A stretch of 64,000 nucleotides of DNA. Source: Adineta vaga (Eukaryota; Animalia; Rotifera). Positions 13,315 to 64,000 of this stretch are shown piece after piece. Made by a program: the position numbers and the translations under genes. The stretch covers positions 10,168,001 through 10,232,000 of the forward strand of contig CP075494.1 in NCBI GenBank assembly GCA_021613535.1, read 5' to 3'. A model generated the notes under the pieces. That model ran no database searches and had not been told where the DNA came from. It saw only the letters and a program-made list of their open reading frames with translations. The number at the start of each line of letters is the position of its first letter. Within the stretch, counting starts at the first letter, position 1.

Positions 13315-16300
13315 ATGAAGAGGAAGTCTCAAAAAGTAGTGCGCTGGTATCTTTACCTTCATTCAGATAAATACTATTATGATCGAATTCAATATCCTCG
13401 GTGTGTTCACTTTGTAGGACCCAACTCTTTTTATATTAGAGTATATTTTCGATTCATTAAACCTGTCCAAACCGACTTTATTGACATAAAACAAAATCCA
13501 GACATTCTCCGCCCATCATTCAAAGTAGTCGATAGGTCTCGACAACTTGATGAACATTCAATATCAACAAATCATTATACTCTATTCGAAGAATATGCTC
13601 CACCTGAAGACCATCAAACTTCATGGCAAACATCTGGATCCTTCTCTCATTACACAAACGACCGTTTGAAAAATGATGTAAATGATTCGAAAGACCTTCA
13701 ACATAAATGGTCTGAAAAGTTAAAGATGGGTATATCTGAATATTATTATGATCGAATCCAGTATCCTCGGTATGTTGACTTTGAAGGACCCAACTCTTTT
13801 TATATTAGAGTATATTTTCGATTCATTAAACCTGTCCAAACCGACTTTATTGACATAAAACAAAATCCAGACATTCTCCGCCCATCATTCAAAGTAGTCG
13901 ATAGGTCTCGACAACTTGATGAACATTCAATATCAACAAATCATTATACTCTATTCGAAGAATATGCTCCACCTGAAGACCATCAAACTTCATGGCAAAC
14001 ATTTGAATCCTTCTCTCATCGCACAAACGACCGTTTGAAAAATGATGTAAATGATTTGAAAGACCTTCAACATAAATGGTCTGAAAAGCTAAAGATGGGT
14101 ATATCTGAATATTATTATGATCGAATCCAGTATCCTCGGTATGTTGACTTTGAAGGACCCAACTCTTTTTATATTAGAGTATATTTTCGATTCATTAAAC
14201 CTGTCCAAACCGACTTTATTGACATAAAACAAAATCCAGACATTCTCCGCCCATCATTCAAAGTAGTCGATAGGTCTCGACAACTTGATGAACATTCAAT
14301 ATCAACAAATCATTATACTCTATTCGAAGAATATGCTCCACCAGAAGACCATCAAACTTCATGTCAAACATCTGGATCCTTCTCTCATTACACAAACGAC
14401 CGTTTGAAAAATGATGTAAATGATTCGAAAGACCTTCAACATAAATGGACTGAAAAGCTAAAGATGAATGTATCGAATCCAGATCAAAGTGAATTACCAT
14501 CAAGCAAGCATGAAAAATCGTCACAAACGTCAACAGATTCGACATCCTTCAAATCCATTTCATCGTTAGAAAACATACAACCAAATGCAAAAACGCAATC
14601 ATCTGTACCAAATACAGCTTCATTTATCAGTCTTGGTGGTGATTCATTAACAATGACCAAAATCTATTACCAGATCCAGTTGGAACTAAACATAGAACCT
14701 GGAGCTTTGAGTATGCGCTTATTCCACGAACACAACACCATAGCGGATCAAGTGAAATTACTACAACAAGCGGAATCTAAACAAAATAGATTCATACGTT
14801 GGCAACCATTACATATTACCAAAGGTAAAGATTTTTCATATCTTGAGGATGGAAAGTATCCTTTTTAATCATTTTAATTCTTCAGGCGTAACATCTTTCG
14901 CTCAAGAACGCATAATTCTTGATGAAGAAATCCGTTTTACCAACATAATCGCGATTTATAATGAATTGATCGCTTTACGAATAGTTCGAGGTTCAATACC
15001 AGTAAAACGTCTCGCTAAAGCTCTCCGAAATATTTTGTCTAAACACAAAATATTAACAACATCTTTCGTGTTCAATCACCTTGATAATATTCTGAATCAG
15101 ATCGTTAACGGCCATCAGGGTAAATTCGAATTAGCTCAGCCAAAGATATTCAGAACTGAAATTGAACTTCATCACATTATTGCTCAAACAATCATGGATC
15201 CCAACTTATTCGATTTAGCACGTGGTCACGTTTTTCAGTGTCGAATGCTCAAACATCAATTCTCACCTCATGACAATATTGATAATGATATCATCTCTAA
15301 ATCTGATGTTCTCCTTATAGTTTTTCATCATACAGTATACGATGGATCTACTTCTTCAATCTTTTTGAGTGATCTGTCCAGAGCTTACAATAACAATACA
15401 GAATGGTCAGAAGATCAAGAATCATTACAATATATCGATTATAGTGTGCATGAACGCCTGATGGACATGACAATATCACGTGATTTTTGGCGTTCTTACT
15501 TAGATGGATATAATGCCAATGGTCGATTATCATTACCAGTTGATCGACATCATTTGTCAAGTGAACAACGCTCCGGATATGCTTCCGTCATTGAATTTTT
15601 TTTAGAAAAGGACACTTCAGTGTCATTTATAAACTATGCTACGACATATCAAATTACACCATTTCAACTGGGTCTAGCTATATTTTATGCATTTTTGTTG
15701 AAACTATCACATAATCATCATGATCTATGTATTTCTTGCATTAATGCTAATCGTTATAGGCCTGAATTACAAAACTTAGTCGGAATGTTTGTCGCTACAT
15801 CACCATGCCGTGTTAAAGTTGATTCTAACTGGTCATTCCACGAACTGGTCAGATGTGTGCGAGAACAATGTTTGTCAATTATGGAACATTCTCATTATCC
15901 ACTACAGCATATTCTTGCTGATCTTCATTCGGATCAATCAATGGTTCCTTTTCTTGATATAATGTTTCATTTTGTTAATATATCTTCAAACATGTCACAG
16001 TTCACTTTGGACGAAACCAGTTTAGAACAAGTACCATTAGCACCTTCATCTGAAGTGGCTAAGTTTGATTTTATGTTGAAATTTGTGTATGACTCAACAA
16101 GTGACGATAGCAAAATATCGTTTCGTTTGATTTGTTCACGAGATGTATTTGATGACAGTACAGTCGCAACGACAGCTCGAAGATTCAAACAAATTTTTGA
16201 ACAGCTTTTTCCATCAAATTTAACCAGCGAACAAACTAATCTATGTGATACGCTCGTGACCAAACTTAATCTCATCCTACCAGAAGAAGATTTAGAAGTT

Positions 16301-19300
16301 CAAAACATGACTTTCTGTCGACAACCAAATGCAATTAACGAAGGTATGTTTTCATATCTCTTAACAAGACAGTCCAATTATATGAAACTAAAACACTACG
16401 AAATAAATATAAGTGTATCAGACATTTCTAAGATACTCGCTCTATCCTGGTGGCTATTTTCCTTCCATGGTTATTGGTTGTTTGACACTATTTTTTTATT
16501 ACAGCACCTGCATCATACGCACAAAGGCAACTTTGGGATTATGAACAGAATCTGTCAAACGCAGAAAAGTCATCAACAGCAATCTACAACATGCCTTTTC
16601 TGTATCGAATAACATCTCAACACGTCTTATCTGCCGAACGACTTGAGAAAGCGCTACGTCTGTTGGTTATTAAACATCAGTCTCTTCGAACCGCACTCGT
16701 CTTTCATCAAGAAAATAATGCTCTTGTGCAAAATATTATTGATCTTGATGATAATCACATCCATCTATTTGAATTTATTGAAAGTACATTCGAAACAGAG
16801 AAACAACTCAGCGATGTTATAAAAGATGAAAGACAAAACGCCCGTCATTTCAATCTTACTCGTGGCTTCGTTTTTCGATGTCATATTCTCTATCATAAGC
16901 ATATTTCTTTGAATCACATTGTGGCTGACAAAGATGCGATTATTTTCAATTTTCATCACATGATCTTTGATTTTGCATCAATGGACATATTTCTTCATGA
17001 TCTCAATCAAGCGTACACAACTGGCCAACTATCTTCGGAGAATGATGATACTCTTCGTTACCTTGATTGTAACTATCTACACATATTGTCTTTTCATACC
17101 ACGTCATTTAACTCTTCTTTCTCTTATTAAGATGCTATTGTTGAACAACAGATACCAATGATGGGTGCACGTATGTTTTGGCTTGATGCTTTGCATAATT
17201 ATGATCTAGATCGACCTCTACCATTACCATACGATCGACATCCTCTCTCACACAAGCATAGAACAGATCGTGGAACATCTGTTTCATTTGATTTTGGTCG
17301 AGATGTTTTTGATTCATTCTTGACATATGCATCATCACATTGCATATCGCTTCAGCAACTATCACTTGCTGTTTACTATGCCTTTTTATTCAAATTCACT
17401 AACGGTGAACGAGACTTATGTATTGCGATGACCATTAACAATCGATATAAAGAAGAACTGAAATCAGTGATTGGATTGTTTGACAATATTATTCCATTAC
17501 GATGTGAACTTCATCCACATTGGTCTTTTGAACAATTCATCGAATATGTTTGTGCGACAGAGATTGATAGCATGAAATATTCATATTTCCCACTTCAGCG
17601 TACTCTTGATCCAAAGTCGAATGGGAAAATAGATGCGTTATACGATATTGCTTTCGACTTTCAATCAAGCGACAAGAGGCAGAGTGCAGTGTTTATAAAT
17701 GATACGCAACTTTATCCAATGCTCACCTCTATCAACAGAAACAGGTACGAGTTGATGAATGCGTTCAATTTGTCACTTGCAACTAAATTTGATATGAATC
17801 TGAAGCAGCTATCATACACATGTAATGCATCACTTGATTCATTCAATGCAGAAACAGCTTTTATGATTGCACAACGATTTCAAACTTTGTTGGAACAGAT
17901 CTTTTGTGCAGCGGATGACAACATGAAGAAAACAATCTATGACCAATCTTTATTGTTAGCAAATGAAAGACTACTAATACAATCAATGAACAAAACAAAT
18001 ATGTTACATTCATCTGTTTCCTGTATACACCATGACTTTGCGTATCGAGTGATAAGACATCCTCAAAAACTAGCAGTTGAACTTGATGAACAATTTCTCA
18101 CGTATTCAGAACTTTTGCATCATACTCAAACTTTATCATTGCATCTTCTTAAGAAATATCATGTCATTCCAGGTGACATACTTTGTCAATGTGTTGAAAG
18201 GAGTTTATCAATGGTAAGTTAATGGATATGTTTTTATGAGAATAATGTGATATTTATGTTCATTAGGTTATCGGTATAATGGCAATTGAGATGATCGGTG
18301 GCGTGTACTGTCCATTATCACCTCGGGATCCGGAGCAACGATTGTATGCACTAGTGGAACAAACAAAAAGTCGTCTAGTTCTTATTCATCATCTAACAAA
18401 AACAAAATTTCCAGATAAATCCGTACTAGTTGACATTGATATATTACTGAATTGTAATAGTATCGATCATGCCATTAATATTGATCGACTATCGATTAGT
18501 ATAATCTCACCAGAAAGCATTGCTTATATCATCTTCACAAGTGGATCAACAGGAATACCGAAACCGGTAAAAAAAAGATAATATTCCTGTTACAGAGTGC
18601 ACTCTTCTTTAATATCTGTAGGCTCAACTTCGTCATCGAAATTTTACTGGATCAATTTATTCTTTGCTGCGTGTTGACATTTTCAATAATATCCATAATG
18701 TTATACAAATGGCACGATGCTCATTTGATATTCATGTTCAAGAAATCATCGGTACATTAATCATCGGAGCAACGCTAGTGATGCTACATCCAAGAGGCAA
18801 TATTGATTTTGAATATCTTTCTATGATCTTAGAATCTAAACAAATTACATTTTTGTATACCGTACCAACTTTGCTCAATTTACTTTTCCAGTTCATTAAA
18901 GAAAATGAGAGACTTTATTCGGTTAAATATCTTAAATCCCTTTGCACCGGAGGTTAGTTTACGAAATACTTTTTCATTAGCGTTCTTCAATCATTGTTTT
19001 TCTAATATTCAGGCGAACGTTGCTCCATACAGTTAGTAAAATTATTAGAGAGTATTGTGAATAGCAACTGTTCAATTTGGAATTTATGTGGTCCCGCGGA
19101 AACCACTTTGCAATCGTTATTTCATCGAGTGAATTCTAAATTAGATACAGAATCTGTACCACTCGGGAAACCACTTCCTCATTACCACTGTATGATTCTT
19201 GATGATTTCGGTCAATCAGTTATTGTTGGTCAAGAAGGAGAAGTGTTAATGGCTGGGGTAGGTATCTTTGCTGGTTATTTTCAACATGATGACTTAACAG

Positions 19301-22300
19301 CGAAGGTTCTTATCGATATTGATGGCGATGTCTATTATCGAACAGGCGATCTTGTTCGAATGGATAACAATGGACTTCTTCATTATGTTGGTCGAAAAGA
19401 TTTTCAAATCAAACTACGTGGTCAACGTATTGAATTAGGAGAAATCGAACGATGTTTACTCAATACATCCATATCTGCTTGTATTGTCGTAAAGTGGAAT
19501 GATAATCATCTCGTTGCTTATGTGCAAAGCTCTGGTACTAAGGAAGAACAACTACGTGAACATTGTCAATCTTATCTTCCACCACATATGATTCCATCGA
19601 TATTTATGATACTTGACAAACTCCCTCTCAATGCAAATGGGAAAATAGATCGAAAAGCTTTACCTATTCCGAACCTCACTATTGATTCATCTGATATACT
19701 TATTAATCAATATAGCGAACCAAAGGATGCACTTGAAATATACGTTCACTCATTATGGTGTAAGGTTCTTGGTCATACTAAAATTTCAACTAGTGCAAGT
19801 TTTTTTGATATCGGTGGTCATTCTCTATTACTTGTGCAACTGTACCAAAATTATAAGATGACTTCAGGTAATAATATCAATAAAATCAGTATTGCAGATC
19901 TTCTGCAGTATCCTACTGTTCGTGGCCATGCTCGTCTGATGGATCAGCAAATGAATAAATCACAAGCTTATGCAGATATTCCTTCAAAATTATCTACTAT
20001 GCTAGGTATATTTCATTGTTGTATCAAGTTTATATATACTTTCAAACAATCTTCTTTTTTTACACTAGCAAAAACAAATTCAACTCAGGAACAAATCCAC
20101 TTTATCCCACATAAAAGCATTAGTCTAATAGTTGATGAGTCGGCACGTTATCAACCATTTCCTGTTACAGACATTCAACAAGCATATCTTGTTGGACGCG
20201 AAGGTTTTATTGTTCTTGGTCATGTTGCTTCATTTTTTTATCAAGAATTCGATTTTCCGTCAACATTTGATACTGAAAGATTAGAAAAGGCACTAAATTA
20301 TTTGATCAATTATCACGATGCACTACGTATCGTTTTTCCGTCTCCTTCAGAACAAAGGATTCTCGAAAAAGTTCCTTATTACACTTTACAAAAACTGAAA
20401 TTAGATGATATTTTGACAGTAGAAAAACAATTAATAGAACGACGACAGCAACTCTCACATCAAATCCGACCAGCTGATCAATGGCCATTGTTTGATATTC
20501 AAATGACTCGTTTTAATGTTAAACATGACTATCAAATTCGTATACATATTGGTTTTGACGCGCTTATCATGGACTTCTGGAGCATGATCTTAATATTGCA
20601 ACAACTAAGTCATTTATATAATAATTTGAGCATTACCTTACCACCACAAGCATTTTCTTTCAGAGATTATGTTTTGGCCGAAGAACAGATCAAGCAATCA
20701 GACATTTATAAAATCGATAAACAATACTGGATGAATCGTTTGAAGACATTTCCTTTGGGTCCTAAATTACCTTTAGTACGTTTGCCACACGAAATACGTA
20801 TACAGCGACATTGCAATTCACAGAAAATATTGGATCATTCATTCTGGGATAAGCTGAGAAAAAAAATACTTGATAATAATCTTACACCGGCTGGTTTTCT
20901 AGCATCCATTTATGTTATCGTGCTGTCCAAGTGGAGCGAAAATAAACACTTCGCTTTAAATCTACCAATATTTAATCGGTTATTGATTCATCCGCAAATC
21001 AATGATATAGCGGGCGATTTTACAGCAGTTCTACCACTAGAAATCAATTTTAACGAACCAATCACATTCTATCAATTCATGAAAACTGTGCAGAAACAGC
21101 TATGGAATGATCTGGAGCATATATCTTACAGTGGCGTATCCTTTATTCGTGATCTGATGCAAGCACATCAGACAAGAGAAATAGTTTTACCTTTTGTTTT
21201 TACTTGTGGAATAGATATTGGTGGTGTAGGTCATAATAACACTCGAGAAAATATGTTCAATAATCGGTTGCCAATATATTCAGTTAGTCAAACACCACAA
21301 GTTTTCCTTGATAATGTAGTATATGAAAACAATGGGCGTCTAATCGTCAACTGGATATATGTAGAAGGTTTATTTTCGGCGGATCTCATCAACGATATGC
21401 ATAAGACATTCATGGACTTGATTTATGAGTTGAGTTCGTCTGATGATATGTGGCAACAACGTGTTTCCATACCGTTACCATCTAATCAGCAAAAAAGAAG
21501 ATTATATCTTAATGAAACACAGTGGGAATCGAATGTCGAACAGCAATTAATTCATTCTCTTTTCACTCAACAGGCTAAACAGACGCCAGATAAATTAGCT
21601 ATTATTTCATCACAAACAAATCTCACATACAAACAACTCATGAATCGTGTATATTCATTAGCATCTCATCTTGAGTCTGAATATAAGATACAACCTAATC
21701 AGCTTATTGCTATTCTAATGGAAAAAGGATGGGAACAAATTGTTGCTTGCCTGGCAATATTAGTTTCGGGTGGTGCTTATTTACCATTGGATATTGATTT
21801 ACCATATGATCGCCTTAGTTTATTGATCGAAGAAACCAATGCTCATATCATTCTTACACAATCTCATTGTCAACATATATTTTCACATTTAACAACTATT
21901 GCAGTGGATACATTTACATATAATAATCAACCAACAACATCATTTCCTATCAAACAACAATCACCAACTGATCTAGCTTATGTAATTTATACATCTGGTT
22001 CAACTGGAAAACCGAAAGGTGTTATGATTAGTCACCAAGCTGTGTTAAATACAATTCTTGACATGAATTCAAGATTGGAAGTATCGCCTAACGACAACAT
22101 ATTTGCATTATCACATTTGAATTTTGATTTGTCTGTTTATGATATATTTGGAATATTGATTGCTGGGGGAACTATTGTAATTCCGAATCATGAAGAATAC
22201 AAAAATCCTAAGCACTGGTATGATATAATGATTAAGTATGGTGTTACCATTTGGAATAGTGTTCCAATGCTAATGCAAATGTTGGTTGAACATGTCAAAC

Positions 22301-52300: not shown

Positions 52301-55300
52301 TTGCTATTGAAACACAAAACTTATCTTTCAATTTTCGAAAAGATAAACTGCGGTCACTGTCTCTTGATAAATCAACCTTTTACTCCGAATGCATATTATG
52401 CCTAGACGTCATATTGAGACAAGTATCTTTCATTCTTTATGTCGATCTTGATCGAATATAACTTTACCATCAGTAAAATTCAGAACATTGACTTTCACAA
52501 TATCGGCTATATATTTAGATGTGTGTTTCGGTGAGGATGACGAGATAAGCAGACGATTAGACGATGGTATGAGTGTTTGCTAGCGTAACAAAATGACGGA
52601 TTCGCAGAGTAGAGTTCTAACGATGAATACATAGCTACAGTTCATCTATGCGACCTGTTCACCGGGCACTATCTTAGCTTTCTTTGTTTTCTGATGGATG
52701 ATCACTCCTATAGGAGTTGTGCTAAATAAAGAAAAAACACGATTGTGAGTATACAGATGAAACAATACATCATCATATCGAAAGACCAAGGGAGAAAAGC
52801 GGATCATGTGGATCCTTTTGTATTCGGCAGATACGCTTGGATCCTATATATTCTATGAATTCTACCGGATCATTTTGGGTCGTATGGATTCTCTTTGATT
52901 TTATCGGATTCTCCTTGATCTTGAGAAAGGGATAAGGCATATCCTAGGATATAACAGAAACCGATAGGATTCAACAGAATCTGATAGGATCCAACAGAAT
53001 CCATAGAGTTCGCTTTTCCCCCCTTGTGATAAATTGATTGAGCTGTCATAAACTCTTTTTGAACGTTTACTGTTCTCCACTTATTTTTTTCAGTGCTAGT
53101 GGTCTTTTTATACACCCCTAACTTCTTTACCTCAAGTTCGGTTAAATTGTTACTGTTCTCATTATTCTAATAATTATAAATTCAAGAGTATGTTAGAATT
53201 ATAATACTTCTCAATTTTACTCGCTCCGACTCTAGGGTATTTTTGAATTCTTTTCAAATTCAAAATGAAAAAAAAAGAACGATATTTTTTCACACAACCC
53301 AGGGTATACGGACTAAACAAAAAAAACGTTTTTATTCAATAAAGACAGTCAATCTTATATTCACTTGGCATCACTAACCGTTTTTATCGTTCTCTCACGA
53401 TTTCAACCCTCTCATCAGACACTGACCAGACATACTTACACTACTATCATCATAGAATCAACACAGTCATTTATTAATATATGGAAATATAGATAGACAT
53501 CAATGTATACTTTCATATATCCTTAATTCTGAAAAGGTTGGGTGTACGGTCTGAGAATATACAGATCTTCACATGCTCTTAAAAGTTTCTATACTGCATA
53601 ACAAATAAAGAGCTGAACATCGGTAGACCTAGCCTCGTCCAGATCAAGGATACATGGAAGTATACATGTATGTATAGTTTTGTATATTTATGTATGAACA
53701 ATTATAAAGACCCAGATACCCATGATTTCAGTCGGAAATGGGGTCATTTTTTTTCTTTTAAATCCAGAAAGAATTCAACTAGACCATTCTATGCTTATTC
53801 CGAGATTCAGATTGTCATAGAAGTCCGATTATTCTAGAACTCTTATTTAGGGATGACACTTTAACTTTTTTTAGAGGTTAAAGTAACTACTTTAACGGGA
53901 AAATGACGTTTCATACCACTTTGTTTTTCCGAACTGCGTGACGAAAAAAAATGATAGAAATCTTATCATGGAATCCGTGAAGCGAAAGTTGAAGTAAGTA
54001 AACAGCATTTTTCGAACGAATGGATGTATAAAATAAGTACTTATATCAATTGGCGGTGCCTGAGCCCACCCAGTCTTACTTGTGGGTGAATTTGGCCCTC
54101 GTTGGCCCACTCTGGACAACATGTCTGCTCACATCCACATCCTCTCGGCAAGAAATTTCCGAACATCCGATAAAAATTCCCGGATATCCGACATCCCCGA
54201 ACATCTGCACGAAATCAGCAAAAAATAGTTTTCTTTTCAAACACCCGGACACGTTACCCGATGTTCAGAATGGATGGTACGAAACGTAGTTCACCCACTT
54301 TAACTTTAAAATCATAGCAAAATAAAACTATTTTGAATTTTAGAATCGTATTAAAGTTAAAATATTTTGAAGTGACTTAGTATCATTTGCAACTGAGCAA
54401 CGAACACATTTTAAATACTATAAAGAAATTTTTAATGTTAAAGCTAAAATGAAACTTTAATCACTTTTTCAAAGTAAAGTTAAAGTTAAAGTGTCACCTC
54501 TACTCTACTTCGTTCAATGTTTCGATAAACCCTACTGGGTCAAAATTCTTGTACTTTTGATTATACTCACGGATCCAAAATTGCGATCATTCTAACATTC
54601 TAACTCTTCTAAAACTCAAACTTATTCATTTTCATAAAAATTTCCACAATATGATAGTCTTTGGTTTCTTGTGCCCGTAATCCGTGTATAATATGCGTAG
54701 TATTTGGAATCCTATTCGAAGTTCGAGTATCAGAAGAGGACTACATGTAATTCTAACTATATTCGACAAATACTAAATTTGATGATGTTCGTAAAGTGAA
54801 TTTGTACGTTAGCACCAGCGTCCTATGCGCAAGCTCGCATTTGGCTCGATGAACGGATTCGATTCGACCCTGACAAACCACAACTCGCAATATACAACAT
54901 GCCTTTTCTCTATCGCCTCTCCTCCGGATATACTCTATCAATATCACAACTTCGCCATGCTCTTCAACTCATTGTGCAGAAACATCTATCACTACGAACA
55001 TCACTCAACTTCGATTCAGAAAACAATGTACTCATGCAACGAATTGTTGATTTAGACAACGATAATAAAGATCAACTATATGAATTCATCGAAAGTACCT
55101 ATGAAACAGAGGAAGAACTCAGTCACATTGCACACTGAGAAAGGCAATCCACATATCTTTGATCTTTCTCGAGGTCTTGTCTTTCGATGCCATCTCGTCT
55201 ACTACAAACGAATATGCACAATTGATCTTCTTTCCGACAAAGATGCGATCATTTTCAATTTTCATCATGCTTTGTTCGACTTTCCATCAATGAGCATATT

Positions 55301-58300
55301 TCTTCATGATCTCAATCAAGCATACACAACCAGTCAACTACCTCCTGATAATGATGATACTCTTCGTTATCTTGATTGTAACTATCTACATATATTGTCT
55401 TTTAATACCATGTTATTTGACTCTTCATTCTCTTTTTAAGATGCTACTATTGAACAAAAGATGCCGATGACAGGTGCAAGCATGTTTTGGCTTGATGCGC
55501 TACATGATTGCCAACTCGATCGACCACTACCGTTACCATATGATCGACATCGTCTTTCAGATGAGCATCGAACTGGTCGTGGAACATCTGTTTCTTTCGA
55601 TTTTGATCGGGATCTTTCACATCACTTCCTTACTTACTCATCTTCAAATGCCATCGGTCTTGAACATCTCGCACTTGCACTATACTACGCCTTTCTATTC
55701 AAACTAACAAACGGAGAAACAGATTTATGCATCGGAAAGAACACAGATGGTCGATACAGAGAAGAGCTTAAGTCAGTCATTGGAATGTTTGTAAATGCTA
55801 TCCCATTACGATGTCAAGTGGATCCTCATTGGTCTTCGCAACAGTTAGTCATGCATGTTAATGAAATAATGACTAATAGTATGAAATACTCGTATTTTCC
55901 TCTTCAACGTATTCTCTCAACATCCGCATGTTGCTAATCCTGCATTTCTCGATGCATCTTTTGGTTATTTTATGCTGGACAATGAAAATAAAAAGAGTGA
56001 AATCATGATTGGTGGTTTTCATCTTCACGGTATGCGTTCCTCACTTAAGATTAGCGAAGAAGAAATAACGAGTAAGTTCGACTTCTTCTTCAATATTCAA
56101 CATAATATTGTCACAAATCAACTATCATGCATAATCAATGGATCGCTTGATCTATTCGATACAGCAACAGTTGATATGATTGTGCAAAGATTCCATTTGT
56201 TTGCACAACATTTTTTTAAATCTGTCGATAATCGAATGAGTAGGCCAATTCATGAGCTATCAATGATATTACCAAATGAGAACATGGTTATGCAATCTTT
56301 GAATAATACGAAAGTGTCATTTCCTTCTGCCACGTGCATTCACCATGAATTTGTTGCTCAAGTAATACAACATCCACAAAAAATAGCCGTTGAACTTGAC
56401 GATCAATCTCTCACATTTGCGGAGCTTCTGCATCAAGCTCAAGCATTAACTCTGCATCTTCTCATACATCACGATGTTCTCCCAGGGGAAATTATCTGTC
56501 AATGTGTGGAGCGTAGTTTATCAATGGTAAACACAATTAAATGATTGTTTCATGATTATCCTATAAATAACTCATTTTCTCTAGGTTATTGGCATTTTAG
56601 CGATCGTCATGGTTGGTGGTTCATATTGTCCATTATCACCACAAGATCCTCCGCAACGTCTGAAAGCTCTTGTCAACCAAATTCATAGTCGTTTGGTTAT
56701 CATTCATCCTACCACAACTGCTATGTTCGAATTGAACACAATGACAGTTAATATTGATACAGCTATGCATTTCAATGAATCGTGTAACGAAGCAAAGGTT
56801 CAGCAACTTTCAGACATACCTATCACAGCAGAAAATATTGTCTTTACAATTTTTACTAGTGGTTCAACTGGTATTCCAAAAGCGGTTTGTATAGTGTCTG
56901 AATTCATATTTATCTAATAAATGTCTGTTTCTTTTCTAGGTTCAAGTGCGTCATCGAAACTTCACTGACTTTATGCACTCGTTTGTTTTTACTGGTGTAC
57001 TCGGAAAGAGCGATGTAATAATACAAATGGCACGTTGCTCTTTCGATAATCATCTTTTAAGTCTCGTTGGTACATTGATGACTGGAGCAACATTAGTAAT
57101 GCTTCGACCGCAAGGCAACATGGACTTAGAATATCTCACTAGAGTGCTTGATAAAAAGCAGATTAGTGTTATGCACGCGGTTCCGTCTTTGTTGAATAGT
57201 CTTTTTCATTTTCTTAAAGAAACTGAGCGTACGTTAGCTGTGAAATGGTTACGATCGTTGTGTAGTGGAGGTTTGTAGTTTTTTTTAACGATTATTGGAG
57301 TATTATAGATTTCTTTTTATTATTTTGTTACAGGTGAAGCTCTCAATGTCAAGACAGCTACCCTATTAAAAAGTGTAGTTTCAGAGACGTGTCAAGTTCG
57401 AAATCACTATGGTCCAGCCGAAGTCACTGTGAACTGTGCTTGTCATCTAATTGATCTGACTAAAGATCAAGAAAGCATTCCTCTCGGTCGACCTCTACCT
57501 AATTATCGATGTTTGATTCTGGACGAGTACTTGCAGACTGTCTATATTGGACTTGTAGGAGAACTTGTTGTTGGAGGAGTTGGCATTTTCGCAGGATATC
57601 TTGCTCGTGCTGATTTAACGAGAGCAGTATTAATTAAAATGAATGATGAGATTTTCTACAAAACAGGTGATCTTGTTCGAATGGACGAAGATGGGTTGAT
57701 TCATTATGAAACTCGTAAAGATTATCAAGTGAAATTACGAGGTCAGCGTATTGAACTGAGTGAAATAGAACAGTGCCTATTGCAAACTTCTGTCGGCGCA
57801 TGCATCGTCATCAAATGGGGTGATGATCATCTTGTTGCTTATGTCCAAAGCTCTGATATTACTGAAGAACAGCTACGCGAACATTGTCAATCATATCTTC
57901 CACCACATATGATTCCATCGATGTTCATCATACTTGATAAACTTCCACTCAATGCAAATGGAAAAGTAGATAGAAAACAACTTCCGCTACCCAATGTATC
58001 ATCCCTGAGCATGCTATCACCAGATGATTCTGATGTTCCACATAGTGAGTTAGAACAAAGTGTGCACGACATCTGGATTCGTGTTTTACGAAGTAATGAA
58101 AAGCAGATTTCTACAAGTACGAATTTTTTCAGTATTGGTGGTCATTCACTTTTGTTTATTGAACTTTATCATCGTTATCAATCATTTTTTGGCTTCAATA
58201 GTCATGAAGTGTCTATTGGTTCATTTCTCCAACAACCAACTATTTTCCAGCATGCACAATTACTTTGTTGCATCCCGATGAACGATTCGGAATCTACACA

Positions 58301-61300
58301 ATGGCATACGTTGCATATACAGCAAGGTATTGAACTTAATATGAATTACTGAGATATAAATAGTGTAATGGTCTTTCTGAATTTGCAGGTATTGCGTCTT
58401 TTGCTCAAGAACGAATTTTTCTCGATGAAAAGGTTCGATTCTCTAATCAAATTGCTATATACAATGAATTGGCTGCTCTGCGAGTTATTCAAGGTTCATT
58501 GTCAGTAGATCGTCTAACACAAGCTTGTCGATATGTCCTTGGCAAACATAAGATACTACGCACATCTCTAAGTTTCAATGAGAATGATGGAATTTTGATA
58601 CAATACATTACTGACAAACATAGAACATTTACAATAGTTACAAATCAAACATTTGAGAATGAGAATGAAGTTCAGAATATTTTTTATCGTGCGACAATCG
58701 ATCCTGATCTATTCGATCTATCAACTGGTCGTGTTTTTCATTGTCAAATAATTTGGCAACAGAACTCAATCGATATAAATGAGAACAGTGAACTTATTAA
58801 AGACAATGATGTGCTCATTATCGGCTTTCATCATGCAGCAAGCGATCGATCATCTCGTCCAGTATTTTACAGCGATCTATATCATGCTTATAATAACAAT
58901 TCAATATGGTTCGACGAAGAGAAATCATTGCAATACATTGATTATAGTGTTCATGAACGTCTAATCGATATGACACCATCACGCGAGTTTTGGCGTTCTC
59001 AACTAGCTGGCTACCATGTTGAGCATCACTTAGCGTTGCCTGTTGATCGACGTCGTTCGCCCAGTGAACAACGATCTGGTGCAAGTTCTATTGCTCAGAT
59101 ATCATTGGACAATGATGTTTCAACCGCATTCTTGGAATATGCTTCATCACATCAAGTGACACCATTTCAACTAGGTCTTGCTACATTCTATGCATTTTTG
59201 TTCAAGTTAACACATGGTGACAATGATATATGTGTTTCGACCCTAAATGCTAACCGATACAGACCTGAGTTGCAGAATATGGTCGGAATGTTTGTTACAA
59301 CATTACCACATCGAATTCAACTTGACCAACAGTGGACTTTTCATGAACTTGTTGAAATTGTGCACGATAAATGCTTATCGATTCTTGAACACTCTTATTA
59401 TCCTTTGCAGCAAATTATAACTGACATGCGTCTGAATCAATCAACTGTTCCATTTCTTGAAACGTTGTTTGACTTTGCTACTGGAACCTCGGATAGCAAT
59501 CGGACATGTTTACAAGCAGCAACTTTGGAATCTATGCCAGTAGAACAATCTACTCATGTTGCTAAATTTGATGTCAAGTTTTCGTTTGTCTATGACCCAT
59601 GGTTAAAAGATAATAAGTTATCATTTAATTTAAATTGTTCAAGTGATTTGTTTCACGGGACAACGGTTCTGACGATGGCTCGAAGATTCAATCATTTTCT
59701 TCATCAAATTTTTTCAACAAATCTAAATGACTCTCAAGTCGACACTCATACTCGAACTTTGAATAAGTGTAATATTATTCTACCAGAAGAAGATTTAGAA
59801 ATTCAAAAGCAAGGCTTCTGTCGACAATTAACTGATACAAAGGAAGGTATGTTGATATTTCAAGAGAAAGCTGCTAGCATGTGAGAGATTGAATCGATAA
59901 AAGCTTGAAAATCTCTCCTGCTTGGAAAAATCGCTTTATTGCTGAAAAGAATTCGTTATAGTACAATGATAAACTTCGCATTCTTGACTAACTTTTGCAT
60001 TGTGAGATCTTAGCGAAAGCATGGGACGTCGCCCAAGAAGTTTTTATTGTTATAACCGGGTAATGGGTTCCTTTTGCGCGTATACTGTCGCTTTCGTTCA
60101 CATCTATCACTGTTATACGCTCTGTAAAAGCTTATTATCGCCAGCCTTAACGAAGATATTCTGAACAAAAAATTAACAGAAAAAGGACGCGGATAAAAGT
60201 GAAGGTGTAGCAAAAGGAGGAACACGTATTATTATGATTTGAACACTCTTTGCATCTACTCTTACGCCTACTCCAGCAGCTTTTATACCCATTGATTATG
60301 GTTGATCTTTGTTTTTCGATCCTTGAAATACGAAAGATCAAAGGACTTTGATATCGCTCGAGAAAAGCTGATCTGGATAAGATAGATCTCAGTTACCTCT
60401 AAATCTATACGCTTGCTTTTGCTCCTATTCACCTGCATCCAAACTCTCGTATCGAAGATGAAGATTTGTTTTTATAGATCATTCTCTTTCTCGTACAGAA
60501 GAGTCTTGCAAGAAAAAACTGTTTGCTTACTTGCTTGTTTGTCTGTGCGCACTTCACTGATTGGTACAAAATCAATGTAAAAATAAAAAGAATTATTTTC
60601 GATAAAACCTGAACGAAGGTTAATCAACATCAGAGATGAACACGGCGCAACATGTTATGTCCTCCTCTGTTCTGATGAACGACAGAACAAAACAAAAATC
60701 GAAAGCACTTCCTGTATAGAGGGCAGGACAACACAGTAAAAGCTCGAATGTGAAAATCGTCCGGACCGACATAAACATCCAGTTTAGCGGGGCAATCGTT
60801 ACAGAGAAAGTTCAACTAGTATTTGCACTTTACAGTTACTTTTCAAAAATAACAATTTTTTACTCGATTAAAAAAACATTATTTCATACGTTTGAAGCAA
60901 CTGTAAAGTACTACTCCTGGGTTCAACAAAAACAAATCCACCCATCCTTTTGCATTATTGTCTACGTTTTTTAGTTAGATTTTATTACTTTATTCAATGA
61001 AGTATAATCGATTGCGACTAAACATTTATCAATACAACAGATACAAATGATAAATAAAGATTCTCTTAAATATGTTGCGAATAATCATTTCTTCTTTTAA
61101 GAATATCAGGTATATTTGCTATTGAAACACAAAACTTATCTTTCAATTTTCGAAAAGATAAACTGCGGTCACTGTCTCTTGATAAATCAACCTTTTACTC
61201 CGAATGCATATTATGCCTAGACGTCATATTGAGACAAGTATCTTTCATTCTTTATGTCGATCTTGATCGAATATAACTTTACCATCAGTAAAATTCAGAA

Positions 61301-64000
61301 CATTGACTTTCACAATATCGGCTATATATTTAGATGTGTGTTTCGGTGAGGATGACGAGATAAGCAGACGATTAGACGATGGTATGAGTGTTTGCTAGCG
61401 TAACAAAATGACGGATTCGCAGAGTAGAGTTCTAACGATGAATACATAGCTACAGTTCATCTATGCGACCTGTTCACCGGGCACTATCTTAGCTTTCTTT
61501 GTTTTCTGATGGATGATCACTCCTATAGGAGTTGTGCTAAATAAAGAAAAAACACGATTGTGAGTATACAGATGAAACAATACATCATCATATCGAAAGA
61601 CCAAGGGAGAAAAGCGGATCATGTGGATCCTTTTGTATTCGGCAGATACGCTTGGATCCTATATATTCTATGAATTCTACCGGATCATTTTGGGTCGTAT
61701 GGATTCTCTTTGATTTTATCGGATTCTCCTTGATCTTGAGAAAGGGATAAGGCATATCCTAGGATATAACAGAAACCGATAGGATTCAACAGAATCTGAT
61801 AGGATCCAACAGAATCCATAGAGTTCGCTTTTCCCCCCTTGTGATAAATTGATTGAGCTGTCATAAACTCTTTTTGAACGTTTACTGTTCTCCACTTATT
61901 TTTTTCAGTGCTAGTGGTCTTTTTATACACCCCTAACTTCTTTACCTCAAGTTCGGTTAAATTGTTACTGTTCTCATTATTCTAATAATTATAAATTCAA
62001 GAGTATGTTAGAATTATAATACTTCTCAATTTTACTCGCTCCGACTCTAGGGTATTTTTGAATTCTTTTCAAATTCAAAATGAAAAAAAAAGAACGATAT
62101 TTTTTCACACAACCCAGGGTATACGGACTAAACAAAAAAAACGTTTTTATTCAATAAAGACAGTCAATCTTATATTCACTTGGCATCACTAACCGTTTTT
62201 ATCGTTCTCTCACGATTTCAACCCTCTCATCAGACACTGACCAGACATACTTACACTACTATCATCATAGAATCAACACAGTCATTTATTAATATATGGA
62301 AATATAGATAGACATCAATGTATACTTTCATATATCCTTAATTCTGAAAAGGTTGGGTGTACGGTCTGAGAATATACAGATCTTCACATGCTCTTAAAAG
62401 TTTCTATACTGCATAACAAATAAAGAGCTGAACATCGGTAGACCTAGCCTCGTCCAGATCAAGGATACATGGAAGTATACATGTATGTATAGTTTTGTAT
62501 ATTTATGTATGAACAATTATAAAGACCCAGATACCCATGATTTCAGTCGGAAATGGGGTCATTTTTTTTCTTTTAAATCCAGAAAGAATTCAACTAGACC
62601 ATTCTATGCTTATTCCGAGATTCAGATTGTCATAGAAGTCCGATTATTCTAGAACTCTTATTTAGGGATGACACTTTAACTTTTTTTAGAGGTTAAAGTA
62701 ACTACTTTAACGGGAAAATGACGTTTCATACCACTTTGTTTTTCCGAACTGCGTGACGAAAAAAAATGATAGAAATCTTATCATGGAATCCGTGAAGCGA
62801 AAGTTGAAGTAAGTAAACAGCATTTTCGAACGAATGGATGTATAAAATAAGTACTTATATCAATTGGCGGTGCCTGAGCCCACCCAGTCTTACTTGTGGG
62901 TGAATTTGGCCCTCGTTGGCCCACTCTGGACAACATGTCTGCTCACATCCACATCCTCTCGGCAAGAAATTTCCGAACATCCGATAAAAATTCCCGGATA
63001 TCCGACATCCCCGAACATCTGCACGAAATCAGCAAAAAATAGTTTTCTTTTCAAACACCCGGACACGTTACCCGATGTTCAGAATGGATGGTACGAAACG
63101 TAGTTCACCCACTTTAACTTTAAAATCATAGCAAAATAAAACTATTTTGAATTTTAGAATCGTATTAAAGTTAAAATATTTTGAAGTGACTTAGTATCAT
63201 TTGCAACTGAGCAACGAACACATTTTAAATACTATAAAGAAATTTTTAATGTTAAAGCTAAAATGAAACTTTAATCACTTTTTCAAAGTAAAGTTAAAGT
63301 TAAAGTGTCACCTCTACTCTACTTCGTTCAATGTTTCGATAAACCCTACTGGGTCAAAATTCTTGTACTTTTGATTATACTCACGGATCCAAAATTGCGA
63401 TCATTCTAACATTCTAACTCTTCTAAAACTCAAACTTATTCATTTTCATAAAAATTTCCACAATATGATAGTCTTTGGTTTCTTGTGCCCGTAATCCGTG
63501 TATAATATGCGTAGTATTTGGAATCCTATTCGAAGTTCGAGTATCAGAAGAGGACTACATGTAATTCTAACTATATTCGACAAATACTAAATTTGATGAT
63601 GTTCGTAAAGTGAATTTGTACGTTAGCACCAGCGTCCTATGCGCAAGCTCGCATTTGGCTCGATGAACGGATTCGATTCGACCCTGACAAACCACAACTC
63701 GCAATATACAACATGCCTTTTCTCTATCGCCTCTCCTCCGGATATACTCTATCAATATCACAACTTCGCCATGCTCTTCAACTCATTGTGCAGAAACATC
63801 TATCACTACGAACATCACTCAACTTCGATTCAGAAAACAATGTACTCATGCAACGAATTGTTGATTTAGACAACGATAATAAAGATCAACTATATGAATT
63901 CATCGAAAGTACCTATGAAACAGAGGAAGAACTCAGTCACATTATGCACACTGAGAAAGGCAATCCACATATCTTTGATCTTTCTCGAGGTCTTGTCTTT
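13315..64000 (+). CDS. Giant intron-containing multimodular nonribosomal peptide synthetase (7 A domains in the window; 3' end lies outside it; true 5' start uncertain)
   Basis: Removing GT-AG introns joins the exons in frame, apart from two 2-bp deletions near 55,129 and 55,918. Introns: 14825-14885, 16344-16504, 17069-17131, 18214-18266, 18567-18621, 18953-19012, 20006-20068, 24683-24743, 26202-28006, 28574-28636, 29725-29779, 30080-30136, 30468-30523, 31517-31582, 33041-33930, 34495-34553, 35642-35696, 35997-36053, 36385-36438, 37438-37497, 39150-39205, 39506-40448, 40780-40830, 41833-41892, 43366-45116, 45687-45741, 46830-46888, 47189-48131, 48463-48513, 49507-49572, 51031-54812, 55378-55440, 56527-56584, 56885-56939, 57271-57333, 58327-58388, 59847-63626. 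A-domain motifs (FTSGSTGxPK, YRTGD, GRKDFQIKLRGQRIELGEIE, NGKxDR), T motifs (GG[HD]SL) and C motifs (SxAQxR, HHxxxD) recur in each module. The first in-frame ATG is at 13,315; a possible acceptor at 13,366 would imply an upstream exon. Confidence 0.92.
13372..14470 (+). repeat. Three in-frame 369-bp (123-aa) tandem repeats at the NRPS N-terminus
   Basis: The unit YYYDRIQYPR...DLQHKWSEKLKM starts at 13,372, 13,741 and 14,110. Copies are near-identical and stop-free. Confidence 0.95.
14430..14824 (+). other. N-terminal carrier (T/PCP-like) domain T0
   Basis: SFISLGGDSL phosphopantetheinylation motif, followed by the same ...TIADQVKLL...WQPLHITKG linker seen after the other T domains. Confidence 0.8.
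14886..20005 (+). other. NRPS module 1: C(HHTVYDG)-C(HHMIFDF)-A1-T1
   Basis: Motifs read from the spliced exons: A4 FDIHVQE, A5 NLCGPAETTLQ, T FFDIGGHSLL. Confidence 0.9.
20069..24682 (+). other. NRPS module 2: heterocyclization Cy-A(Cys) with embedded oxidase-T2, on a single 4,614-nt exon
   Basis: Cy motifs FPVTDIQQAYLVGR, DALIMDFWS (DxxxxDxxS), PFVFT and SQTPQVFLD. A-domain segments FDLSVY, IWNSVP, LLSGDW and SLGGATEASIWS give the Cys code DLYNLSLIWK. Ox motifs RKSYRQF, KYRYASxxxLYPV, GLYYHNP and LETGY lie between A8 and A9. T motif FFNLGGDSLL. Confidence 0.93.
26655..27277. mobile_element. Non-autonomous Mutator-like (MULE) element, 623 bp, intronic
   Basis: Perfect 9-bp flanking duplication TAAAAACAC (26,646-26,654 and 27,278-27,286). 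Ends GAGTCTACGAAAATTGATCG / CGATCAATTTTCGCTTTCCC, with iterated inverted CGAAAATTGATCGA subterminal repeats. Confidence 0.85.
27460..27850. mobile_element. hAT-type MITE, 391 bp, intronic
   Basis: Imperfect ~140-bp terminal inverted repeats (TAGAGCTCGG... / ...CCGAGCTCTG) and a perfect 8-bp target-site duplication AACAAAAG (27,452-27,459 and 27,851-27,858). Confidence 0.88.
31583..37437 (+). other. NRPS module 4: C(HHAAFDR)-C(HHAVFDI)-A4-T4
   Basis: A4 FDVHVLD, A5 NLYGPAETIIC, T IFSIGGHSLL. Confidence 0.9.
36765..38607 (+). repeat. Segmental duplication A, copy 1 (copy 2 at 41,160-43,002; offset 4,395)
   Basis: Near-identical sequence from the A7 motif (TGD) through T, the 60-nt intron and most of the following C domain. 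Confidence 0.93.
37498..41832 (+). other. NRPS module 5: single C(HHAAFDG)-A5-T5
   Basis: The C domain runs directly into the A domain (SMNNTEM...IHHEF) in one exon, 37,498-39,149. A4 FDIHVQE, A5 NLCGPAETTLQ. Confidence 0.9.
39261..41107 (+). repeat. Segmental duplication B, copy 1 (copy 2 at 46,944-48,790; offset 7,683)
   Basis: Near-identical A-domain core, including the 943-nt and 51-nt introns. Confidence 0.93.
41893..49506 (+). other. NRPS module 6: C(HHAAFDG)-C(HHALFDY)-A6-T6
   Basis: A-domain core identical to that of module 5; T FFSVGGHSLL. Confidence 0.9.
44528..44614. mobile_element. Tiny foldback MITE with CAAGG-type ends (P-element-like by inference), 87 bp
   Basis: 23-bp TIR CGAGCGGGAACAAACTGATTTCA / TGAAATCAGTTTGTTCCCCCTTG, internal TGATTTCA repeats, flanks ATACATTT / ATACATGA. 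Confidence 0.65.
52787..53026. mobile_element. MITE with CAAGGG ends and GGATC/GGATT subterminal repeats (copy at 61,602-61,841)
   Basis: TIR CAAGGGAGAAAAGCG / CGCTTTTCCCCCCTTG. No clear target-site duplication. Confidence 0.6.
53848..54502. mobile_element. hAT-type MITE, 655 bp, with a GC-richer internal segment (copy at 62,663-63,316)
   Basis: TIR TAGGGATGACACTTTAACTTT / AAAGTTAAAGTGTCACCTCTA, degenerate 8-bp TSD CTCTTATT / CTCTACTT, iterated TTTAAC/GTTAAA subterminal motifs. Confidence 0.72.
58389..64000 (+). other. NRPS module 8, partial: C(HHAASDR)-start of second C
   Basis: IASFAQERI exon at 58,389-59,846. The APASYAQARIW exon starts at 63,627 and runs off the window. Confidence 0.88.

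Follow-up and report, generated by a model that had tools for sequence, protein, structure and literature searches.

The standard module of a giant nonribosomal peptide synthetase (NRPS) gene of the bdelloid rotifer Adineta vaga carries two complete condensation (C) domains in tandem. Most of this intron-bearing gene lies on the + strand of chromosome 5 between bases 10,168,001 and 10,232,000, the stretch of 64,000 nucleotides that is called the window here and whose first base is position 1. The first domain of the pair, Ca, follows the carrier domain (T) of the upstream module, and the second, Cb, precedes the adenylation domain (A). Judged by sequence, both are full condensation domains of the LCL kind, and neither is an epimerisation (E), DCL or starter domain. 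The architecture of the module, this classification, the origin of the pair and the co-inheritance of its parts are, taken jointly, very probably correct. It is somewhat probable, in addition, that the two domains form a duplicated LCL pair of the bdelloid NRPS family in which Cb would condense and Ca would serve as a repurposed donor-side partner.

Module architecture of the gene

The gene starts near position 13,255 and continues about 37 kb past the window end. Its short GT..AG introns are about 60 nt long, and the G+C content of the window is 35%, both values being in keeping with a bdelloid rotifer. Pfam searches of all open frames together with a motif scan give the order N-terminal repeats, T0, Ca1-Cb1-A-T, Cy-A-(Ox)-T, Ca2-Cb2-A-T and Ca3-Cb3-A-T in the first half, followed by Ca4-A-T, Ca4'-Cb4-A-T, Ca5-Cb5-A-T and Ca6-Cb6... 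in the second (Table 1). A first-pass annotation of the window, made from its letters alone, had described two full C-family domains per standard module, and Pfam indeed matches each Ca frame to a complete Condensation domain and each Cb to another, whose match is divided between two frames. The Ca and Cb motifs listed in that annotation are all present in the motif scan; Ca is a single exon, as it had stated, and Cb has its intron at YLD^Y, in phase 1 and with a length of 57-63 nt (^ marks the splice site). Its figure of six paired modules stands, but that of seven C-containing modules has to be corrected to eight, namely six with Ca and Cb, one Cy-A-(Ox)-T and one T-Ca-A. The single HHAAFDG Ca of the earlier count had merged Ca4 with Ca4', which is a 97.8% copy of it over the first 1.1 kb.

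Domain class of Ca and Cb

The Pfam Condensation profile (PF00668) matches both domains above its gathering score; Ca has 159-183 bits over profile positions 7-440, and the two exons of Cb jointly cover positions 5-442; Cb was searched exon by exon or by way of database proteins (P0001, P0005), the window exons never being joined. The two His and the Asp of the HHxxxD motif do not vary among 30 Ca and 23 Cb sequences, and every window copy has them too. The second catalytic His is thereby kept throughout, unlike in non-catalytic C-like domains such as the X domain and VibF C1. A profile search of the PDB with the 30 Ca and 23 Cb sequences places LCL domains first (DhbF, TycC6 and Txo1/2, with expect values of 1e-26 to 1e-31), whereas the values for the E domains of GrsA, TycA and TycB lie between 6e-7 and 0.009 with Ca and are 0.03 at best with Cb. 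Bacterial reference domains came from 79 loci that the Ca profile had retrieved; they were labelled by context, a C domain after T counting as LCL, a domain with EGHGRE/GWFT as E and a C domain after E as DCL. The scores of the subtype hidden Markov models (HMMs) for LCL, DCL and E are 212, 88 and 29 bits for Ca and 190, 85 and 26 bits for Cb. The AlphaFold model of Ca2 (predicted local distance difference test, pLDDT, 89.4; predicted template modelling score, pTM, 0.89) has the two-lobed, V-shaped fold, with template modelling scores of 0.77-0.81 to TycC6, FscG C3 and TomB C. No E domain is among the 50 best structural matches of this model, all of which belong to the C superfamily and are headed by LCL C domains, and a look-up in the ESM Atlas returns the annotation 'Condensation domain' only.

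An extra domain in the position of Ca would ordinarily be looked for among E domains. The TIGR01720 model gives no match to Ca or Cb at expect values up to 1 and none in the whole genome (100.8 Mb in six pieces), which has at least 74 C-domain matches; the B. subtilis control was positive. Canonical epimerisation domains therefore seem to be absent from the A. vaga NRPS set, as far as the sequences tell. The E motifs EGHGRE and RTVGWFT are absent from Ca and Cb, and the dual C/E motif HH[I/L]xxxxGD is absent from the first 90 consensus positions of both. The first-pass annotation had likewise noted that Ca lacks EGHGRE and GWFT and had read a C-type motif in it, which is GMFV(S/A/T)TLP in the copies. 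Its conclusion that Ca is not an E domain is borne out by signature as well as descent: TIGR01720 does not match, the E HMM is far below the LCL HMM, E structures rank far lower, and Ca lies outside the E clade in the best trees.

Origin of the pair

Ca and Cb align with each other from end to end in hhalign (probability 100, 32% identity over 464 columns), and their identity to the best bacterial C domains is 20-29%. Trees were obtained by quick searches under LG+G4, and support is given as the Shimodaira-Hasegawa-like approximate likelihood ratio only. E domains form a separate, long-branched clade (support 100), and DCL domains form another together with starter-like domains (99), which excludes Ca and Cb. 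All rotifer C domains fall into one clade (100), sister to bacterial LCL domains (96). Inside this clade the single-C types are basal, and Ca and Cb are grouped together (93), each being a clade of its own (Ca 99, Cb 100). Because Ca and Cb are nested in the rotifer clade above the single-C types, the tandem pair arose by duplication inside the rotifer NRPS family. Because both types are found in Adineta and Rotaria, the duplication is older than the split of these two genera.

The alternation of Ca with a two-exon Cb is found, by the Ca and Cb HMMs, at loci fetched from chromosomes 1, 2, 3, 5 and 6. It was followed further in a set of bdelloid proteins, 218 annotated sequences from A. steineri, A. 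ricciae, A. vaga, Rotaria sordida and Rotaria sp., which are predicted gene models and often partial. In this set, 121 full Cb domains are preceded by a first-position C domain (81), by the protein start (24) or by unresolved sequence (16), and by a T directly in no case (0/121). The 169 full Ca domains are followed by Cb (73, of which 7 are low-scoring), by the end of the gene model (91) or by unresolved sequence (5), and directly by an A in none (0/169). The pairing of Ca with Cb is near-obligate. The tandem alternation is not due to chance, because it recurs on five chromosomes and in the bdelloid protein set. A third C type with HHIAFDN/L, which forms its own clade, occurs at apparent gene starts either in first position before Cb or ahead of T-Ca-Cb (L092:2359-5303, L082:640-2916, L095:1622-4990). 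Because this type can hold the first position, the pairs are not always made of Ca and Cb. The ordinary order T-C-A, with one C domain and the canonical HHxAFD(G/A), is found in other A. vaga clusters, which lie on chromosome 6 (13.6 and 1.0 Mb) and on chromosome 1 (13.7 Mb). In small bacterial samples, no tandem C-C arrangement was found among about 210 C domains in the 79 loci, and none of the 69 matches of a didomain profile to five bacterial genomes spanned both halves.

Co-inheritance of neighbouring parts

Pairwise identities of neighbouring parts were compared over 22 junctions by the Mantel test. Ca varies together with the upstream T (rho 0.69, p 0.0005), Cb exon 1 with Cb exon 2 (rho 0.79, p 0.0005), and Cb exon 2 with the next 95 residues, which comprise the linker and the start of A (rho 0.54, p 0.004). 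For Ca and Cb exon 1 the values are rho 0.14 and p 0.14. Because Ca follows the upstream T, Cb follows A, and Ca and Cb are uncoupled, the heritable cassette is Cb-A-T-Ca, with its break at the Ca-Cb intron. Single cases show the same pattern. Ca3 and Ca5 are 75% identical, and the stretch of the A C-terminus and T has 85% DNA identity, while their Cb partners are only about 50% alike; Cb2 and Cb5 share 87% DNA identity, while Ca2 and Ca5 share 53% protein identity. The T domains before Ca of the DG subclade have a conserved HH(I/T)WCD(I/L) about 22 residues ahead of the GGHSL serine (37176 and 41571; also P0020, P0033 and P0036), and this stretch is a marker of co-inherited T-Ca pairs.

Junctions, introns and transcription

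In every window copy, Ca ends with ...ILPEE..E.Q..F.RQ...NE followed by GAAG^GTA(T/C)G. Cb begins, again in every window copy, after AG with two bases that complete an Ala or Val codon and then PASYAQ, the junction reading from ..NE to (A/V)PASYAQ. Because the sequences of the Ca end and the Cb start match throughout, the six Ca-Cb junctions are taken as phase-1 GT..AG introns at one shared position. The first of these introns is 160 nt long, and the other five have 0.9-3.8 kb with dispersed, partly palindromic repeat fragments. The long ones (26662-27849, 51035-54815) contain inverted-repeat pieces resembling miniature inverted-repeat transposable elements (MITEs), copies of which with 70-95% identity lie on other chromosomes (for instance 95% at position 1419167 of chromosome 4). 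Introns elsewhere in the gene have about 45-65 nt, except those of about 785 nt inside two A domains (39589-40374, 47272-48057). The T-Ca introns are also in phase 1, at the equivalent place before the C1 motif of Ca, and phase-1 introns sit a few codons ahead of the C1 motif of each C domain. A long Ca-Cb gap was also considered as a gene boundary that would separate proteins of the order Cb-A-T-Ca. This was set aside as less likely, as all six gaps are in frame, of phase 1 and bounded by GT..AG, the first is only 160 nt long, and gene models in other species are joined.

Because they have phase 1 at both ends, the Ca exons are symmetric (1458 nt for Ca1 and Ca2). If such an exon were skipped, T would be joined in frame to (A/V)PASYAQ, so that Ca could be a cassette exon and the pair a splicing option that yields an ordinary T-Cb-A. 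RNA was available from three small runs of one 2024 study that behave as RNA, at a depth of about 3. RNA contigs skip 24682-24743, which joins T2 to Ca2, and 30080-30136, both at GT..AG. They lie over 24600-25751 and 26014-26195 (Ca2) and over 28774-29585 (Cb2 exon 2 and the start of A) and are empty over 26283-28713, the region of the Ca2-Cb2 intron, whereas a DNA run covers the whole stretch. Both Ca and Cb are transcribed. The splicing option is highly improbable, since T2 is joined to Ca2 in RNA and further contigs lie over Ca2, Ca3 shares an exon with its T, Ca is under purifying selection, and the gene models of other species hold both domains.

Constraint and signature residues

The ratio of nonsynonymous to synonymous substitution (dN/dS) is 0.36-0.49 for Ca at dS 0.26-0.64, where the paralogs are not saturated. 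For Cb it is about 0.15 in exon 1 and 0.2-0.3 in exon 2, at higher dS than in Ca. All seven core motifs are recognisable in both domains. Ca and Cb are both under purifying selection, and neither is a decaying relic. Across modules, the N-lobe and the C-lobe of Cb have mean pairwise identities of 0.60 and 0.57, and those of Ca 0.47 and 0.54. Cb is more uniform than Ca, and this in modules whose A domains have different residues at specificity-pocket positions.

The canonical form of the C5 motif is (I/V)GxFVNT in the Marahiel motifs. The Asn of this motif is present in 45 of 45 bacterial LCL, 11 of 11 DCL, 13 of 13 rotifer single-C and 20 of 20 Cb domains. At the same position E domains have Ser (76%) or Cys, and Ca has Ser (72%) or Ala in this smaller set. 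In a larger set the residue of Ca is Ser in 129, Ala in 27, Thr in 10 and Asn in none of 166 sequences, and that of Cb is Asn in all 117. Ca alone is thus without the C5 Asn that is common to every sampled condensing class, in line with the suggestion of the first-pass annotation that one member of the pair may have been repurposed. An equation of the C5 Asn with N335 of VibH was rejected, as the distance from the catalytic His is about 209 residues for N335 and about 155 for C5. S309 of CDA-C1, at +152 from the catalytic His, may be the counterpart of the C5 position.

The residue after the Asp of HHxxxD is Arg or Gln in about 75% of Ca and Gly in about 20%; in Cb it is Phe or Tyr and never Gly. 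Of the canonical LCL core residues, the Gly of HHxxxDG and the C5 Asn, Ca as a rule has neither and Cb has the Asn only. The Gly is an acceptor determinant in VibH (G131), CDA-C1 (G162) and PapA5 (G129) (PMC6996325 Table 5). The first-pass annotation had taken DG versus DR as a mark of different functions between modules. The copies do not show this: the residue follows the Ca subclades (one five-member subclade, support 99, is all DG), and Ca1, which belongs to the other subclade, has DG as well.

Proposed division of labour between Ca and Cb

In the proposed mechanism, an LCL C domain was duplicated in tandem in a bdelloid-specific NRPS family, became fixed as two types and would have spread by module duplication. 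Cb would form the peptide bond, because its linker to A is of the normal kind, its variation follows that of A, and it has lost none of the residues that are invariant in condensing C domains. Ca would act on the chain on the upstream carrier, or hand it over, and would no longer be an ordinary acceptor-using condensation domain. Such a role as donor-chain actor or gate is suggested for Ca because it belongs to the upstream module, keeps its His, has both acceptor-side positions changed and carries the E-domain residue at C5. In T-E-C-A-T systems, E is the first stop of the upstream carrier, and the second is the donor site of the next module's C domain, which is seated on A. The geometry of T-Ca-Cb-A-T would be the same, with Ca in the slot that an epimerisation domain has in T-X-C-A. 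On the sequences at hand, the chances of this division of labour between Ca and Cb look about even. By analogy, epimerisation is the leading specific guess for Ca, in a genome without a canonical E domain, and gating or hand-over is about as likely. A bolder proposal, which is possible though rather doubtful, is that Ca would be a new functional class of the C superfamily, derived from LCL in an animal lineage and converged on the solution of E domains (His kept, C5 Asn changed to Ser), that epimerises, or modifies in some other way, nearly every upstream residue before coupling by the uniform Cb. In that case Cb-A-T-Ca, with phase-1 introns at its borders, would correspond in nature to the engineered exchange unit XUC, and, if this is true, an animal could shuffle NRPS modules by intron recombination.

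Several observations weigh against this mechanism. Cb departs from the Gly after Asp as well. Two modules of the window gene, at 37488 and at the terminus, have the order T-Ca-A without Cb, and if they are functional, a Ca with Ser at C5 is able to condense. Ca lacks the acid/base Glu of E domains that EGHGRE provides, so that epimerisation would need other means, and the near-obligate pairing would be more readily expected of a unit with two parts than of an optional tailoring domain such as E. A C-superfamily tree had been proposed as a check in the first-pass annotation; Ca is not grouped with E in the best tree, but a tree in which Ca and E are held together is not rejected at 0.05 by the approximately unbiased (AU) test (difference in log-likelihood 37.8, p 0.098). 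Because the AU test could not reject an E branch on Ca, the tree is weaker than the HMM and motif evidence on this question. That annotation had also raised the possibility that transcripts never include more than one of the two domains. The RNA contigs over both contradict this, but the joint from Ca to Cb was not observed, no contig crossing the Ca2-to-Cb2 joint at the depth of about 3. A model of the Ca-Cb didomain, a further check proposed there, gave no usable interface in AlphaFold (11 sequences, pLDDT 50, pTM 0.30). Finally, three tandem 8.8-kb units (48600-64000 of the window and onward) are about 100% identical from mid-Ca (about 50100), the 3.78-kb intron included, and differ by indels of 1-2 nt. 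Several of these shift the Cb frame (55128, 55912 and a copy at the window-equivalent position 64271, which is position 10232271 of chromosome 5); they may be real recent damage or errors of assembly or polishing in the repeat.

The T-Ca-A modules, the terminal one included, would be accounted for directly if the roles were reversed, with Ca forming the peptide bond and Cb acting as an accessory fixed to A (as a platform, as a gate for the acceptor or in a tailoring step on the acceptor side). The bacterial LCL HMM slightly favours Ca (212 versus 190 bits), about one fifth of Ca domains have the canonical DG, the bulky Phe or Tyr of Cb stands at the Gly acceptor determinant (PMC6996325), and the Cb N-lobe is unusually uniform across modules with differing A domains. 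However, it is Ca that is without the Asn found in every sampled condensing class, and Cb has it; Cb, not Ca, has the normal linker to A and co-varies with A; and the 218 database proteins, A. vaga gene models among them, include no T-Ca-A. A reversal of roles is therefore considered unlikely.

It is likewise unlikely that Ca has no catalytic role and serves for docking, for dimerisation or as a scaffold, in the manner of VibF C1 or the glycopeptide X domain. Known silent domains lose the second His (HRxxxDD in the X domain, HPxxxD in PfaA C2), whereas every Ca examined retains it along with all core motifs, and the dN/dS of Ca is 0.36-0.49. The altered acceptor-side positions of Ca and its near-obligate pairing with Cb would suit such a role, and C-like domains that are silent have precedents (PMC5577590, PMC11546977).

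It is very unlikely that both domains condense, either in two acylations per module with the extra unit supplied in trans, as in IcoA module 3, or as redundant copies. Both keep HHxxxD and are constrained, the tandem C domains of IcoA each perform one condensation (PMC6553374), and the tandem Cy domains of VibF split their labour (PMC5577590). Neither Ca nor Cb is of the starter type, however, the starter/DCL clade being separate; the C5 Asn is lost in Ca; a second carrier or trans donor is not evident; and the second acylation would be needed at nearly every module. Redundancy would not keep two distinct types fixed across Adineta and Rotaria. Condensation by Cb, with Ca as its donor-side partner, is the more probable reading.

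Other features of the locus

The positions of the domains and of the two introns described individually are collected in Table 1.

Table 1 Domains and selected introns of the NRPS gene in the window
Feature	Position	Strand	Evidence and remarks
N-terminal region	13370-14478	+	Three 123-aa repeats, 369-nt period, 96.8% identical; no Pfam match
T0, lone carrier domain	14605-14760	+	PP-binding match at aa 455-506 of frame 13243-14865; GGDSL at 14635
Ca1 exon (HHTVYDG at 15326)	14886-16343	+	1458 nt, phase 1 at both ends; Pfam C 163 bits; Ca HMM 14882-16249, 709 bits
Cb1 (HHMIFDF at 16954)	16504-17931	+	Two exons, 63-nt intron 17069-17131; continues into A1; Cb HMM 16501-17070 and 17134-17931
Single C-family domain of the Cy-A-(Ox)-T module	20248-21489	+	Pfam C at aa 415-828 of exon 19006-24711 (5.7 kb); no HHxxxD in motif scan; no Ca ahead
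Ca2 exon (HHAAADR at 25184)	24744-26201	+	1458 nt, phase 1 at both ends; Ca HMM 720 bits
Ca2-Cb2 intron	26202-28005	+	About 1.8 kb; donor GAAG^GTATG, acceptor AG, phase 1; MITE-like inverted repeats
Cb2 (HHALFDF at 28459)	28003-29442	+	Two exons, intron at about 28576-28638; Cb HMM 335 and 400 bits
Ca3 (HHAAFDR at 32023)	31570-33040	+	One exon with A C-terminus and T3 (30496-33040); Ca HMM 682 bits
Cb3 (HHAVFDI at 34380)	33921-35356	+	Two exons; Cb HMM; matches annotated protein P0001:829-1291
Ca4 (HHAAFDG at 37953)	37488-38876	+	Followed directly by C-A linker and A, giving T-Ca-A without Cb (Pfam C and A in adjoining frames)
Ca4' (HHAAFDG at 42348)	41883-43365	+	Ca HMM 672 bits
Cb4 (HHALFDY at 45572)	45113-46541	+	Two exons; Cb HMM
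Ca5 (HHAAFDR at 50013)	49572-51030	+	Ca HMM 733 bits
Ca5-Cb5 intron	51031-54811	+	3.78 kb; 99.95% identity with the two following introns of this kind (59847-63625; the other past the window end)
Cb5 (HHALFDF at 55263)	54806-56244	+	2-nt deletions at 55128 and 55912 relative to the tandem copies
Ca6 (HHAASDR at 58829)	58382-59846	+	Ca HMM 755 bits
Cb6 start	63620-64000	+	Interrupted by the window end; Cb HMM

Beyond the window, the gene terminus (positions 10260022-10265220 of chromosome 5) consists of T-Ca-A-T, with Ca9, followed by a hexapeptide-repeat region of the left-handed beta-helix type (PF00132); neither a thioesterase nor a reductase domain is present at the terminus. The segment Ca3-Cb3-A-T-Ca4-A-T of the window is a copy of the last two modules of the gene, Ca3 and Ca8 being 99% identical. 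About 3 kb past the gene end, a retroelement resembling long interspersed nuclear elements, with endonuclease and reverse transcriptase open frames, lies on the minus strand (positions 10268252-10271313 of chromosome 5; L101:6252-9313). Directly upstream of the gene, a satellite occupies positions 1-10,610; its 80-bp unit is repeated in tandem about 130 times, with 84-92% identity between registers and a strong purine skew of the + strand.

Significance and comparison with known systems

Bdelloid NRPS genes are numerous and are switched on against a fungal pathogen (PMC11258130). The text of two papers reports many clusters, a monophyletic bdelloid clade of C domains and 'substantial diversity in domain organisation' (PMC11258130, PMC10531068); the Ca-Cb pair is not described in that text, and the figures may depict it. 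Ca is a candidate new C subtype. Because classifiers would call it a plain LCL domain, product predictions for bdelloids, stereochemistry included, could be wrong. The pair also offers a clean natural system for the question of what job an extra C domain has. Furthermore, a natural exchange unit that breaks between donor-side and acceptor-side functions would be relevant to NRPS engineering.

The closest parallel in layout is T-E-C(DCL)-A of bacterial and fungal NRPS. As in T-Ca-Cb-A, a C-superfamily domain without a carrier of its own stands between the upstream T and the condensing C domain. The E domain, like Ca, is inherited with the upstream module, has HHxxxD and carries Ser rather than Asn at C5. 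In contrast to E, Ca is derived from LCL, lies outside the E clade in the best trees and is without EGHGRE, GWFT and a TIGR01720 match. Moreover, Ca is found at nearly every junction and E at selected ones, and Cb is not DCL by sequence.

The engineered exchange unit XUC has the composition CAsub-A-PCP-CDsub (PMC11546977). It resembles Cb-A-T-Ca in that the acceptor-side part moves with A and the donor-side part with the upstream T. However, XUC splits one C domain into its subdomains, whereas the break in the rotifer gene is an intron between two whole C domains.

Tandem C-superfamily domains are known from three further settings. In module 3 of IcoA (LCL-CI-A-PCP), a starter C domain for the loading of a second fatty acid comes after the LCL domain, and the two are both competent for catalysis (PMC6553374). 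As in the rotifer gene, two tandem C domains precede one A-T; IcoA has them in one bacterial module and with a starter domain in second place, whereas both rotifer domains are LCL paralogs, recur from module to module, and the first is without the C5 Asn. In VibF and AngN, the second of two tandem Cy domains condenses and the first cyclises (PMC5577590, PMC10510592). There too the domains are paralogous, and the one adjacent to A condenses while the other carries out a second step, in keeping with the roles proposed for Cb and Ca; they are of the Cy type (DxxxxD) and occur once per enzyme, whereas the rotifer domains are of the HHxxxD type. In PfaA, a fungal hybrid of polyketide synthase and NRPS, C1 and C2 are both needed, the role of the extra one is unexplained, and C2 has HPxxxD without the catalytic His (PMC11731387). 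These tandem domains are, as in the rotifer, nearer to C than to E; they differ in being confined to a single junction, in the HPxxxD of C2 against HH in both rotifer domains, and in belonging to an unrelated lineage. The tandem C domains described so far are thus single cases (IcoA, PfaA, VibF/AngN), and in none of them do two fixed subtypes derived from LCL form the rule for a whole family. The rotifer pair, in contrast, is the standard arrangement in hundreds of modules from at least two families of bdelloids, and its subtypes are told apart by a simple residue signature.

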